IMG/VR virus record: IMGVR_UViG_3300022744_000022
Location: 124,001 to 188,000 of that record
Length of the DNA: 64,000 nt
Strand: one strand, 5' to 3'
Positions 10,818 to 37,456 of this stretch are shown one piece after another. Within the stretch, counting starts at the first letter, position 1, and each line of letters opens with the position of its first letter. The position numbers and the translations under genes were made by a program. The notes under the pieces are model-generated. The model was not told the DNA's origin. It saw only the letters and a program-made list of their open reading frames with translations, and did no database searches.

Positions 10818-10991
10818 ATGCAAGAAAACTTGGCCGATGTGTTGTTGAAGACCGCTGATGTGCTGCACTGGCTCGGCAAGTACGACTCGGCCAACGCCTT
10901 GATCCTGCTGTCCCGGTTGCTGCGGGCGCACAAGATCGAGAACCTGGACCAGCTTGAGAGGTTGGTTGTGGATCAAGAAGCTAACGTTTGA
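10818..10991 (+). CDS. Small helical protein (57 aa), absent from the ORF track
   Basis: MQENLADVLLKTADVLHWLGKYDSANALILLSRLL...; good codon bias; convergent overlap. Confidence 0.6.
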   Translation: MQENLADVLLKTADVLHWLGKYDSANALILLSRLLRAHKIENLDQLERLVVDQEANV

Positions 10992-11703
10992 GGGCTTCTC
11001 GAAAGCGCTCTGCAACCTTCGCAGCGAGTCGGATCTTCGCTGAGTCGTAGAGCTGCTGGAGCTTGGCCCGATCCTCGGCGGCGTGGGGCATCGCGAAGCC
11101 GCCTTCACCGATACGAGGTCCGTTGGCCCAACGAGGATCGTCGGTTTTGACCAGGCGGCCCTCGTACCCACTCACGTACTTGTCGATGTACTTCTGCATC
11201 TTGGGCGTGATACGGACACCCAAGGCGTACCCAAGGTTACCCCCAGGACCCATGGGGCTCACGAGCAGAAAGTAGGGCTTGGTCTTCTGCTCCAGCACGT
11301 AGGTGGAGTCTGACTTCTCGGTGACGAAGTTGGCACCCGCTACGCTGTTGACCTTCCGAGCAAGCTCTTGAAAACGGTCCCCGTGCTCCCTGGGCTTGAT
11401 GCCCATCTTCACGAGGGCGACGGCCTCTGCATCCTCGTTGAACTCCAAGAACTCGACGTGGTGGACCATCTCGTGAGCGACAACCCGTTCGAGGGTGCTC
11501 TCATCTGAGAAAATGCTGCTTTGCAGCTCCATCACATTCTGCTGGCCATTACGCCAGATCAACCGCCCCAGCCACTTGGCTCCGAGGTTGTCCCGCACTA
11601 CGATCTTGGGAAGCTCAGTGACGCCCAACATGCGGGCGTACTTGGCCGCCACCCTGGCTGCCACCGAGGCGTCGGCTTTCGCTGTGAACTGGCGCTGCGT
11701 CAC
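10981..11703 (-). CDS. SprT-like zinc metalloprotease
   Basis: HEMVH (HExxH) plus HGDRF; RVAAKY and KVAERF motifs at both ends. Confidence 0.85.
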   Translation of the reverse strand: MTQRQFTAKADASVAARVAAKYARMLGVTELPKIVVRDNLGAKWLGRLIWRNGQQNVMELQSSIFSDESTLERVVAHEMVHHVEFLEFNEDAEAVALVKMGIKPREHGDRFQELARKVNSVAGANFVTEKSDSTYVLEQKTKPYFLLVSPMGPGGNLGYALGVRITPKMQKYIDKYVSGYEGRLVKTDDPRWANGPRIGEGGFAMPHAAEDRAKLQQLYDSAKIRLAAKVAERFREALKR

Positions 11704-11729
11704 GCTCTAGCCCGGGCACAAGAAAAGAC

Positions 11730-12281
11730 TCACGCGGGGTGGTGCCCGAGCTTCTCCCTCAAGGCCCTGAGCACAGCCTTCGTGACGTACTTGTCCAGGC
11801 TGTCCCAGCCCGTGGGGCTTGGGTGCCGGGCAATCTCCCGGACCGTGGAGCTGGACACGAACGAGAACTTGGGCTTTGTGGGCAGGAAGAAGGTGTCGAG
11901 GTTGGGGGCGAGGCTCGCGTTGGCGTGGGCAATCCCTAGCTCGGCCTCGAAGTCCGTGACGGCCCGCAGACCACGGACGATGACTGTGGCGTGTTCCCGC
12001 TTGCAGAAGTCCACCAGCAGGTCGTCAAAGCTCGTGACCGTGATGGCCCCTGGGTCGATCACGTTCTTGGTTCCCCAGGCTTCGTGGGCCTCTTGCCATT
12101 GCTCGTCAATGCTCGCCTGGATCATCGCGATGCGTTCTTCAAGCGTGAACAACGGCTTCTTGGCCGAGTTCACACCCACAGCGACGACAAGCCTCTCGAA
12201 GGTCTTGGTTGCCCGGTAGATCAGATCCAGGTGACCCTTTGTGATGGGGTCGAAGCTTCCTGCGTAGACGGCTGTGGTCAT
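11730..12281 (-). CDS. coaD: Phosphopantetheine adenylyltransferase
   Basis: YAGSFDPITKGH, IVRGLRAVTDFE, SFVSSSTVREIA. Confidence 0.93.
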   Translation of the reverse strand: MTTAVYAGSFDPITKGHLDLIYRATKTFERLVVAVGVNSAKKPLFTLEERIAMIQASIDEQWQEAHEAWGTKNVIDPGAITVTSFDDLLVDFCKREHATVIVRGLRAVTDFEAELGIAHANASLAPNLDTFFLPTKPKFSFVSSSTVREIARHPSPTGWDSLDKYVTKAVLRALREKLGHHPA

Positions 12282-35307: not shown

Positions 35308-35793
35308 GTGACCGTCAAAGCCACTCTTGCTACGAAGCTGAAAGACATCCGTGACCTCAAGTCCAAAGGGGCGGGCTTTGAGGTTCAGGCCATGTACGAG
35401 GTCCTCGCCCTGGAGAAAGCCTCGGTGTTGTGGCGTCGAGACGGTACCGAGACGTTCACCACCGTGCTCAAGGAAGAGGTCGGGGTCTGCACCCCGACAC
35501 GGTTCAAGGCCTTCAAGAAGGCCGCCGAATACTTCACGCAGGACACCATCGAGAAGCTCGGTGTTCCGTGCGTGTGCCTGATCGCCACGCAGAACCAAAG
35601 CGTCCGGCAACGGATGCTCAAGGACGCGCTCACGTACCGGAAGGATCACGGGTCTGAGCCCACCTACCAATACTTCTCGCGCTTCTTGCGCAAGCCTGGA
35701 AAGGCCGTGTCACGGACCCGGCTTCTCAAGTACGTCGAAGTGCTCAAGGCCGAGATCAAGAGCCTCGGTGGGCGCGTTCCGGTGATGGAGTAA
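35308..35793 (+). CDS. Hypothetical basic protein
   Basis: 161 aa, strong codon bias. Confidence 0.8.
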   Translation: MTVKATLATKLKDIRDLKSKGAGFEVQAMYEVLALEKASVLWRRDGTETFTTVLKEEVGVCTPTRFKAFKKAAEYFTQDTIEKLGVPCVCLIATQNQSVRQRMLKDALTYRKDHGSEPTYQYFSRFLRKPGKAVSRTRLLKYVEVLKAEIKSLGGRVPVME

Positions 35794-35831
35794 CCGACCC
35801 GATCTCGGGTCCCAGATGAAAGACAGATCAG

Positions 35832-36380
35832 ATGAAAAAGAGCAAGCTACGGTTCCTGTTGAGTCTGCACGAGAACATCAATCAAGGCTGCGAGATCCTC
35901 GCCGTCGATCGTGCCACCTTCATGCCGACTCTGGATCGCTTCTTCGAGACCGTCAGTCTCGGCATCGAGATGGGACTCAAGATGAAGGGCTCGAAGTCCT
36001 CACTGGCCGCCAAGAAGCCGGTGGCCGCCAAGGGGAAGGCCAAGAAGTCGGTGGCCGCCAAGGGGGAGGCCAAGGCCAAGAAGTCAGGGAAGGGCGGCAG
36101 CAGGAAGCACGACCCTCAACGAACCCTCAACGTGCTGACGGCCGTCAAGACCCACCTGGGGAAGACTTCCCCGATGCGTTTGAAGGACATCATCGAGGCG
36201 GTCAAGCCGCTCTTGAAGGGGATCAAGGACCCGCAGCAAGCCGTCTGGAAGATGCTCACGGACTGCCCTGAGATCGAGAGCGTCCCCAAGCAGCGTGGCT
36301 TCTACCGTTTGAAGCCCTCGAAGAAGGTCTTGAACGGCAAAGCCAATGGCAAGGCGACGCACGCCGTTGCCTTGAACTAG
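35832..36380 (+). CDS. Lys/Ala-rich (histone H1-like) protein with C-terminal wHTH-like domain
   Basis: AAKKPVAAKGK repeats; LKDII...AV..ML...RGFYRL. Confidence 0.7.
   Translation: MKKSKLRFLLSLHENINQGCEILAVDRATFMPTLDRFFETVSLGIEMGLKMKGSKSSLAAKKPVAAKGKAKKSVAAKGEAKAKKSGKGGSRKHDPQRTLNVLTAVKTHLGKTSPMRLKDIIEAVKPLLKGIKDPQQAVWKMLTDCPEIESVPKQRGFYRLKPSKKVLNGKANGKATHAVALN
36009..36068 (+). repeat. 2 x 30-nt coding repeat
   Basis: GCCAAGAAG(C/T)CGGTGGCCGCCAAGGGG(A/G)AG. Confidence 0.85.
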
Positions 36381-37456
36381 GTTCGGGACGCGAGATAGCG
36401 GCTCACCACAGCGGCGGCAGTTTTCTTGTCCTTTGCTTCCGCTCCCATGGAGTTGAGGACTTCTTGGAAGTCCTCATCGGTGAGCTGCTCGATCTCTTTG
36501 GCCACCGCTGCCATCATGAACTTGGCCATTGCGTCCTCGGCAGAGTCGCCTTTTGCGTCCTTGTCCTCGGAAGCGATGTGCTGAATCAGGTGGGCCACGC
36601 CATGTCCAACGTGCCCCAGCTCTTCTAGCATGTGCAGGTCCCCAAGGTGTTTAGACACCGACTTCATCGCCACATGCCTAGCCAGATTTTTGGCGAACAC
36701 CCCAGCGGCCATCAACGGGCCTGACGCAGCAAACGCAGCGGCAGCTCCGCCAATCGCCATGTGGGTGGCTACTTCCTTGAAGGCGGATTTCTGCTTCTTG
36801 GTCATCTTGCCGCCCTGCATCACGGCCTTGACGCCCTCTGCGGCAGTTTTGAACTCGTGAACCTCGTGCTTGGCGGTAGTCACGAGGTTCGTGATCATCT
36901 TCTTGGGGGCGTTCACCAGGGCGTCTTTCGCTTCACCCAACGCCTTCTTGCGGAACTCATCGTCCCCGAAGAAGTGCTTGACCGCTTTCGGGGCTGCCTC
37001 CACGAACTTCGTGGCTGACTCAGAGAGGCCTTTGAACCGGGCCTTCCAAGCGTCGAACTTGCCCGCAGGCTTGGCGGTCTCCTTGGGGGCCTCGGGAGCC
37101 TTGGCTTTGGCGGGCGGGGCCTTGGGCTGAGGCTTGGCCTCTGGCTTGGACTCAGGCTTCTTCTTGGCCTTGTCCGGGATGGGCGGCGGGGTGCTCTTAG
37201 GAGCCTTAGGCGGAGTGCTCTTGGGGCCAGCCGGGGGCGGGGGCTTGGGGGGCGTCTTACCGCCCGCTGGCGGGGGTGCTTTGGGCTTCTTGACCCCGGG
37301 CTTCTCAGCCGGGCCGCCTTTGGCCTTGTTCTCGTTGACCGAGTGCTGGGTCCTGTCGGCGTCCGGGTGTTCCTTGAGGTACTCGTTCAAGGCCTTCTCG
37401 GAGGGGAACTCCTTGGCTTGACGGTACCTGGACGCGACTCGTGCTGCTAGACCCAT
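36377..37456 (-). CDS. Pro/Lys-rich protein with RVASRY and VVSRY termini, possibly virion-associated
   Basis: MGLAARVASRY start; hydrophobic hairpin; ends AVVSRYLASRT. Confidence 0.8.
   Translation of the reverse strand: MGLAARVASRYRQAKEFPSEKALNEYLKEHPDADRTQHSVNENKAKGGPAEKPGVKKPKAPPPAGGKTPPKPPPPAGPKSTPPKAPKSTPPPIPDKAKKKPESKPEAKPQPKAPPAKAKAPEAPKETAKPAGKFDAWKARFKGLSESATKFVEAAPKAVKHFFGDDEFRKKALGEAKDALVNAPKKMITNLVTTAKHEVHEFKTAAEGVKAVMQGGKMTKKQKSAFKEVATHMAIGGAAAAFAASGPLMAAGVFAKNLARHVAMKSVSKHLGDLHMLEELGHVGHGVAHLIQHIASEDKDAKGDSAEDAMAKFMMAAVAKEIEQLTDEDFQEVLNSMGAEAKDKKTAAAVVSRYLASRT

Follow-up and report, generated by a model that had tools for sequence, protein, structure and literature searches.

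A conserved terminal peptide, RV(A/V)xR(Y/F)L, on otherwise unrelated proteins of a clade of uncultured large phages: a probable docking tag

Targeting peptides that give unrelated proteins a common address are already known, among them the capsid targeting sequence (CTS) of phage T4, the cargo peptides of encapsulins and the tags recognized by ClpX. The T4 CTS is a short peptide common to unrelated proteins, host-modifying enzymes among them, that enter the head and are injected from it. It is confined to the N-terminus, and gp21 cleaves it off at an L/I-x-E site. Encapsulin cargo-loading peptides occur at the N- or C-terminus of unrelated enzymes and dock inside an HK97-fold shell, and the ClpX-binding (XB) tail of SspB binds ClpX as a strand. 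ClpX signals are N- or C-terminal peptides (PMC7226468), and the SspB tail bound by the ClpX N-domain reads RGGRPALRVVK (PMC3983244). In the keyword-retrieved passages of Iyer et al. (2017; PMC5512222), where T4 Alt is also cited, the repertoire of phage "polyvalent" proteins is predicted to enter the capsid and be delivered together with the DNA, and MPTase domains are argued to process the polyvalent proteins. Here we describe a peptide motif, RV(A/V)xR(Y/F)L, carried by three proteins of a window of 64,000 nucleotides (bases 124001-188000 of the 208,486-bp IMG/VR virus record IMGVR_UViG_3300022744_000022) and by further proteins of that record and its relatives. The analysis confirms the motif, shows that selection on it acts on the protein and that it clusters near protein ends, and finds it kept from genome to genome while its place shifts among ends and fusion joints. 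It is very probably a shared, portable docking tag; that its putative receptor is the assembling phage head is a tentative proposal, and the one we favour.

The tag resembles each of these systems in part. Compared with the T4 CTS, it stands at either or both ends and also at joints, has no sequence likeness and no evident cleavage site, and the packaging of its carriers is putative. As in encapsulin cargo, it is a short conserved end peptide on a linker borne by unrelated carriers, whereas its consensus is another one, it belongs to a tailed phage and not to a nanocompartment, and docking to the shell is again putative. The XB tail is likewise a terminal peptide on a flexible tether, and its ALRVVK core resembles the (A/L)LRV(A/V)xR of the tag; in the tag, however, R-(Y/F)-L is an obligatory extension, a helix is predicted, and one complete genome that has the tag encodes no phage ClpX. 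The carriers also recall the polyvalent proteins as portrayed in the retrieved passages: they include MPTase zincins, LPD1, TopoIB, Zeta toxin, ART-PolyVal and DUF5661, and the phage type of polyvalent protein, encoded beside portal and terminase, is seen in two relatives, G003 and G001. Polyvalent proteins have 2-15 domains per polypeptide; one carrier of 1037 aa is a true polyvalent protein and another of 959 aa perhaps is, whereas most are single-module. The modules are mostly solo genes, each with an end tag of its own, and those passages yielded no such end tag.

About ten otherwise unrelated proteins bear the core of the motif, A-x-R-V-A/V-x-R-Y/F-L, at their start, at their end or where two domains meet. 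The logo of 75 instances reads (T/K)-(L/A/T)-A-x-R-V-(A/V/L)-(A/S)-R-(Y/F)-L-x-A; among these instances, which were selected by regular expression (regex), the first arginine is present in 92%, the valine in 93%, the second arginine in 92% and tyrosine or phenylalanine in 100%, and matches to a hidden Markov model (HMM) agree with these frequencies. The RV(A/V)xR core is found in nearly all instances; A or L, and sometimes KTA, often stands ahead of it, with L directly before RV in about 20%. The HMM has 16 columns, was built solely from homologues on other contigs and was applied with a score cut-off of 4 bits. Its training instances were regex-selected from the homologues of two window proteins, an SprT-like peptidase and a protein here called P0003; the family of the third window carrier (a kinase), the relatives G003 and G018, the ClpX loci and the phage Tunturi_5 are independent of that training.

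The original prediction drew on six strings in the three window proteins, all of them present where it placed them, and proposed a genome-wide motif count, which exceeds chance. The expression [RK]V[AVLS]x[RK][YF] matches 12 times in the 62,059 residues of the whole record, as opposed to 1.0 ± 1.0 times (maximum 5) in 200 per-protein shuffles, and the HMM gives 14 matches of at least 4 bits in the same residues versus 0.3 per shuffled proteome, with a gap in the record's scores from 5.0 to 2.6 bits. In a six-frame scan all matches of at least 7.7 bits lie in true coding frames, and match density is 10 times higher in coding frames than in the other frames, which hold a few weak matches. Synonymous codons vary from one instance to the next, which indicates that selection acts on the peptide and not on the DNA. 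A DNA-level repeat or regulatory element as the source of the motif is ruled out, since synonymous codons differ and strong matches are confined to coding frames.

Similarly to the record, two complete relatives are enriched in the tag, with 9 matches in G003 against 1.4 expected and 13 in G018 against 0.4 expected, the strongest enrichment observed. No match was found in 29 unrelated ClpX loci (about 150,000 residues) or in the whole genome of the cultured relative Tunturi_5 (GC 58%). Across three genomes, 27 of the 32 instances scoring at least 5 bits lie no more than 30 residues from the N-terminus or 25 from the C-terminus, where about 19% would be expected (p per genome from 3e-4 to 1e-9), and in G018 all 12 instances at this score are terminal. 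Moreover, the motif is retained at 29-70% overall identity across three protein families. The 219 genes of the record come from a crude heuristic calling based on codon usage, and longest-open-reading-frame starts were used, so that N-terminal tag counts are conservative and N-terminal positions still hinge on start choice. Neither the motif strings nor YLKEHPDAD turned up in any paper when the full-text literature was searched.

The three window carriers were described in the original prediction as unrelated, which holds: BLASTP aligns motif with motif only, and Pfam assigns them to SprT-like, to Zeta_toxin and to no family. The sharing of the motif also stands, whereas its distribution is wider than first described, with ten carriers in the record, seven of them outside the window (Table 1), and a linkage to ClpX had been overlooked.

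Table 1. Tag carriers, tags and other features of the window and record. Unmarked coordinates are window positions; those marked "genome" refer to the whole record.
Feature	Position	Strand	Details
SprT-like zincin peptidase gene, tag carrier	10981..11703	-	240 aa, HEMVH; Pfam SprT-like, E 3.9e-8
SprT C-terminal tag LAAKVAERFREALKR, final 15 residues	10984..11028	-	HMM 6.1 bits
SprT doubtful N-terminal instance VAARVAAKYAR, residues 14-24	11632..11664	-	HMM 8.6 bits
Zeta-toxin-type P-loop kinase gene, two tags	31445..33163	+	572 aa; Pfam Zeta_toxin, E 6.2e-8
Kinase N-terminal tag MLPERVLRRYLRAK	31445..31486	+	HMM 7.8 bits
Kinase internal tag QAAQRVAKRYLEAT	32822..32863	+	HMM 13.3 bits
P0003 gene	36377..37456	-	359 aa, no assigned family; 61 homologues, alignment with 18 homologues
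P0003 N-terminal tag MGLAARVASRYRQAKE	37409..37456	-	HMM 16.1 bits, best score in the record
P0003 module following the N-terminal tag, residues 16-45	37322-37411	-	loci L037-L067
P0003 C-terminal tag KKTAAAVVSRYLASRT, KTA ahead	36380..36427	-	HMM 6.0 bits
HExxH zincin carrier	genome 33255		
HExxH zincin carrier	genome 85285		
HExxH zincin carrier	genome 101831		
1037-aa carrier	genome 102793		HExxH zincin N-terminal part, LPD1, TopoIB, DUF5661 (Pfam)
226-aa carrier protein	genome 87577		
959-aa multi-module carrier	genome 88268-91147 (L002:3268-6147)	+	directly downstream of ClpX
94-aa carrier protein	genome 97202		
Phage ClpX	genome 86278-87552 (L002:1278-2552)	+	zf-C4_ClpX 3.9e-13, AAA_2 3e-26
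Stand-alone ClpX-type zinc-finger protein	43183-43734	+	183 aa; PF06689, E 2.5e-12
GGTGTA sites, by window start	1572, 15244, 39412, 43998, 57632, 60545	+	
GGTGTA sites, by window start	39042, 50443, 58918, 60063	-	
Protein ending TLFD(H/K)L plus acidic residues	3394-4074	-	
Protein ending TLFD(H/K)L plus acidic residues	61704-62768	+	

P0003 consists of a tag, a small YLKxHPDAD module, a P/K-rich linker, a helical hydrophobic domain and a second tag. Its AARVASRYRQA occupies residues 4-14, at a position conserved in the family and with R10 nearly invariant, and its AVVSRYLAS occupies residues 349-357, with V350 and R353 invariant in the 18 aligned homologues. The family keeps both tags down to about 30% identity; where homologues are longer, ART-PolyVal, DRAT or other modules come after the C-terminal tag, which then lies inside the protein. 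In an AlphaFold2 (AF2) model the terminal helices (residues 3-12 and 344-358) have a low predicted local distance difference test (pLDDT) score, the core (131-336) scores 85-92, and linkers lie between. A Foldseek search of this model against PDB and BFVD gave nothing at E ≤0.001, and the ESM Atlas gave only unnamed clusters. The family is present in all tag-bearing genomes examined (G000, G001, G003 and G018); tblastn against the GenBank phage collection, Tunturi_5 included, found no P0003 homologue, nor did a direct comparison with the Tunturi_5 proteins.

The module that follows the N-terminal tag of P0003 reads (D/E)FP(S/T)xxALxxYLKxHPxADxxxHxV and recurs at the N-terminus of many otherwise different proteins, at most three per genome. 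In distant genomes and in distant kinase orthologues, a LIRLAHxNPELRxHLLPLL helix precedes this module in place of the RVAxRY tag, and from this shared position the two helices may be interchangeable address tags. Residues 46-130 of P0003 form a TonB-like Pro/Lys-rich spacer of about 85 residues, and residues 220-280 of the core hold a conserved, very hydrophobic Ala/Gly-rich helix pair; spacer and hydrophobic core would suit a periplasm-spanning or membrane-inserted protein.

The ATG start of the Zeta-toxin-type kinase is backed by an identical 572-aa record and by 66 homologues. ERVLRRYLRA occupies its residues 4-13, and this N-terminal tag is present in 22 of the 66 homologues. The internal tag, AQRVAKRYLEA at residues 462-472, comes after a long P/E/K-rich linker and before a C-terminal domain of about 100 aa; it is found in 27 of the 66 homologues, in tandem in two of them. 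Shorter homologues (P0112 and P0114) stop a few residues past it, which makes the internal tag the C-terminal tag of the kinase module.

The SprT-like protein has 27 homologues, which lie on contigs up to 550 kb. In this family the tag changes ends: it is N-terminal in eight orthologues, on the C side in two and missing from 16. The C-side carriers are the window protein, with AAKVAERF at residues 227-234, and P0005, which is 87% identical to it and retains the tag (14.4 bits) ahead of an extra domain; the C-terminal tag is an add-on missing from most orthologues. The second string of the window protein, AARVAAKY at residues 15-22, aligns with the conserved first helix, KYARMLGV, with Y22 invariant in 19 homologues. 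True N-terminal tags in the eight orthologues stand upstream of that helix, at the extreme N-terminus, and score 13-17 bits. Because it overlaps a conserved helix of the SprT domain, the N-terminal instance in the window protein is doubtful, and it may be part of the fold or a hybrid. As an observation in its own right, the only Tunturi_5 homologue of this protein is residues 116-342 of gp321, a 1362-aa protein annotated as "MutT/NUDIX hydrolase" (L146:433-4521, plus strand; PP885688.1 261501-265589) in the virion gene block between the head-tail connector and minor tail genes; gp321 is probably a virion-borne polyvalent protein.

Over the whole record, the repertoire comprises the SprT-like protein and four further HExxH zincins, five of MPTase type in all, the Zeta kinase, LPD1, Topoisom_I and DUF5661, with ART-PolyVal and DRAT in homologues. 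The topoisomerase illustrates how the tag moves: it is N-terminal in stand-alone TopoIB genes of G001, G003 and G018, at both ends in G018, and in the 1037-aa protein of the record it lies at the joint where TopoIB is fused behind zincin and LPD1. A second short string was seen in the 959-aa protein, which contains seven KTA tripeptides against 0.3 expected, each at an apparent module boundary. KTA is 4.2-fold enriched in the head block of G003 (p 0.0017), and KTA(A/S) recurs in the N-arm of the major capsid protein (MCP), the N-region of the portal and the scaffold candidate of relatives; it may be a separate processing or maturation cleavage site.

The record is rated 44% complete, with a GC content of about 59%, which puts the full genome probably at about 450 kb. 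Its first 60 kb hold baseplate and tail genes (Baseplate_J and hub PHROGs), and the 60-85 kb region holds replication genes encoding a helicase, a DnaB-like protein and a family A polymerase. Head genes were searched for in the record and are absent; the sole match to the G003 head block is the TopoIB module. No close relative at the DNA level was found when 8 kb were compared by blastn with GenBank phages, which gave nothing beyond a chance-level match of 79 nt. The tag-bearing phages form an uncultured clade with genomes of about 300-530 kb; related "small" contigs (37-133 kb) are rated 7-29% complete and so are fragments of genomes in the same size class. The nearest cultured relative found, Tunturiibacter phage Tunturi_5 (PP885688.1), infects Acidobacteriota; the clade MCP is 47% identical to its counterpart in this jumbo phage and 38% identical to gp27 of Bacillus phage G.

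Head genes, with an HK97-type MCP, are the conserved core of all tag-bearing genomes, and the MCPs of G001, G004 and G018 are 80-94% identical to that of G003. The order in G003 is p129 (tagged), TerL, TopoIB (tagged), portal, a 1166-aa protein with a tag-like sequence, protease, scaffold candidate and MCP. G001 has the same head order, with tags of 14.7 and 9.5 bits on either side of TerL, and two tagged genes of G004 lie about 5 kb from the MCP. The Pfam models Terminase_6C and Terminase_6N missed TerL in five genomes, where PHROGs detected it.

The phage ClpX of the record, which has tagged genes on both sides, has counterparts in G001, G003, G004 and 11 of 23 further records. In G001 an unbroken run of five genes at ClpX is tagged, four at the N-terminus and one at residue 72; in the loci L093, L095 and L096 the gene adjoining ClpX begins with a tag; and at least eight genomes have a gene of the P0003 family 0-3 kb downstream of ClpX and on its strand. 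The record's ClpX retains the zinc-finger cysteines, the GYVG loop and the [LMI]GF ClpP-docking loop (here LGF). Its RKH loop is replaced by GMGSRAVSGM, as in the orthologues of six relatives, whereas all 27 other viral-contig ClpX proteins compared keep this loop, as RK(H/N/M/G); it governs the degron specificity of ClpX (PMC7652416). G018, complete at 301.5 kb with terminal repeats, has no ClpX by zinc-finger profile or protein search, and none was found in G022 (94% complete) or G023. A complex prediction that paired two copies of ClpX residues 1-60 with residues 1-40 of P0003 had a score of 0.02 and the outcome "no answer", which counts neither for nor against binding.

Two further observations concern ClpX. 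The window encodes a stand-alone 183-aa protein whose first 40 residues form a ClpX-type C4 zinc finger, followed by an undescribed domain; such a protein might act on ClpX as an adaptor, an anti-adaptor or a decoy. The ClpX of G001 (791 aa; L090:15071-17446, minus strand; G001 277071-279446) has an intein-like insert of about 360 residues (C...HN) that splits Walker A into GPSG and TGKT, and the ClpX frame of G016 has 781 aa.

We read the tag as a short, probably helical peptide on a flexible tether, which this clade attaches to either end, or to both, of effector modules that have genes of their own: zincin peptidases, the Zeta-type kinase, topoisomerase IB, ADP-ribosyltransferases and a TonB-like linker protein. 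Other phages string such modules into one polyvalent protein; here a tag on each would replace the physical linkage. We infer one common receptor that all carriers would bind through the tag, the likeliest being a head component (scaffold, portal region or shell interior), and each solo module would enter the head during assembly and leave it with the DNA at injection, in parallel with the T4 CTS or an encapsulin cargo peptide. The head is favoured as receptor on the strength of the effector repertoire, the TerL/portal context and the place of head genes in the conserved core of tag-bearing genomes. Also in its favour, a tagged zincin of the record lies within the baseplate module, and in Tunturi_5 the SprT-like domain belongs to gp321 of the virion gene block. 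The original prediction had suggested a capsid-packaging signal for ejected enzymes, and that part gains from the match of the carriers to the polyvalent repertoire and from the tagged genes flanking TerL, with packaging itself putative; its suggestion of cleavage after the following Ala has no support, and N-terminal tags carry no conserved cleavage site after them.

Several findings, the lack of such a site among them, weigh against the head. The record is without head genes, so the head context is known from relatives only. In G003, only 3 of 9 tags lie in the head block (binomial p ~0.006, our own estimate), and most carriers are scattered. Several carriers sit in an apparent ClpX operon behind the hexamer GGTGTA, which also stands upstream of the helicase and DNA-polymerase genes, and such an operon would suggest non-late expression of the carriers. 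The conserved synteny of ClpX and P0003 points to another partner.

The hexamer itself, as GGTGTA(G/A), has its first base 14-16 nt before the start codon of about 30 genes of the record, with no Shine-Dalgarno evident there; outside the window it precedes the ClpX, helicase and DNA-polymerase genes, and it is missing from the tail block. It marks replication-type genes. It is not enriched genome-wide (117 versus 102 expected), so that position and not frequency stands out. Its role might be that of a promoter giving leaderless or short-leader transcripts, or of an unusual signal for ribosome binding. In agreement with what was first noted, none of the three window carriers has GGTGTA within 100 nt upstream of its start. 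As a marker of the class this absence was set aside: none of the ten carriers has the hexamer near its called start, the kinase at its true start included, yet only about 17% of genes do (p ~0.16). Other terminal strings also occur, namely TLFD(H/K)L plus acidic residues at the ends of two window proteins (the LFDHL class), and P-x-RF(D/E)RE(D/E)P(L/I) at the ends of 15 of 504 G003 proteins (for example 289724-290209) and of none in G018.

A ClpX receptor, the main rival, is unlikely in our estimate, although it deserves weight. The tag would then be a tether or degron that binds the N-domain, in the manner of the SspB tail, or the pore, of phage or host ClpX, and tagged effectors would be unfolded, remodelled or degraded on schedule. 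The placing of phage ClpX amid tagged genes, in the record and in relatives, with the P0003 family downstream, is consistent with this, as are the absence from the record's ClpX of the RKH loop, which sets degron specificity (PMC7652416), the terminal nature of ClpX signals, the likeness of many tags to the SspB tail and the second, stand-alone zinc finger in the window. However, G018 combines the highest tag enrichment with a complete genome devoid of ClpX, and G022 and G023 are also without it; phage ClpX is therefore not required, and host ClpX could substitute. Phage ClpX as an obligatory receptor is weakened accordingly. L precedes RV in a minority of instances, a helical tag would differ from the strand-bound XB tail, and the synteny involves mainly one family, P0003, and one conserved neighbour. 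Somewhat less probable than ClpX is another phage hub, for example the helical core of P0003, on which tags would dock to form head-to-tail chains, giving a scaffold or condensate that recruits tagged enzymes. The P0003 family accompanies the tag in every tag-bearing genome examined and is absent from tag-less Tunturi_5; tags at both ends of P0003, the kinase and the G018 TopoIB suit multivalent assembly; and the core is well folded with no known fold. AF2, however, shows no confident docking of the terminal helices on that core, and the co-occurrence of tag and P0003 rests on five genomes. It is quite unlikely that head and ClpX are both involved, with the tag an XB-like handle by which the RKH-less phage ClpX, or the host's in ClpX-less relatives, seizes solo effectors and unfolds them for prohead loading or holds them unfolded for passage through the tail; the outcome would be an AAA+ "protein packaging motor" that reads an address code of its own, analogous to the chaperone/ATPase step of type III secretion.

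The remaining explanations fare worse. It is very unlikely that the tag is an amphipathic helix targeting the host inner membrane, like the end helices of MinD, FtsA and MreB: a terminal, probably helical position, Arg and Tyr/Phe flanking a small hydrophobic face (by our own inspection of the logo) and the TonB-like and hydrophobic segments of P0003 would agree with it, but residue identity is far stricter than in lipid-binding helices and the hydrophobic face, rich in Ala, is weak. More improbable still is that the prohead protease or the phage zincins recognize or cut the motif as a mark of where polyproteins are divided. Tags do occur at module joints, five carriers are peptidases, and KTA is enriched and often stands ahead of the tag; yet KTA is absent after N-terminal tags, single-module genes need no cutting, and the complete motif lies 3-8 residues from the first Met and 2-6 from the stop, where a cut would leave one side. 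Since nothing of the motif is missing at either terminus, neither a plain cleavage site nor the pure prohead-protease signal that the original prediction had allowed for is likely. That the motif has no shared function, as a compositional accident of Ala/Arg-rich proteins at 59% GC or a common capping helix of unrelated folds, is barely credible. The proteins are indeed rich in A, R and V, one SprT instance overlaps a domain helix, and a few weak matches fall in non-coding frames; composition-keeping shuffles (0.3 versus 14), the tenfold coding-frame density, the end bias, conservation in three families and the complete lack of matches in Tunturi_5, a related jumbo phage of like GC, contradict it.

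Within the literature searched, no earlier description was found of the consensus, its use at either or both ends, its spread over a split polyvalent repertoire or the link to an RKH-less phage ClpX. Tunturi_5, being without the tag, could serve as a clean gain-of-function background. If the tag is an address label, it provides a sequence rule that lists the proteins which phages of about 300-530 kb send to one destination, whether as head cargo or as ClpX clients. Contigs of this clade are numerous in metagenomes of soil and freshwater, and the rule would turn dozens of "hypothetical" genes into a functional set. If true, the proposal would show a giant polyvalent protein splitting into solo genes without loss of delivery, and a peptide of 10-15 residues might load foreign proteins into large capsids or direct them to a specialised ClpX.

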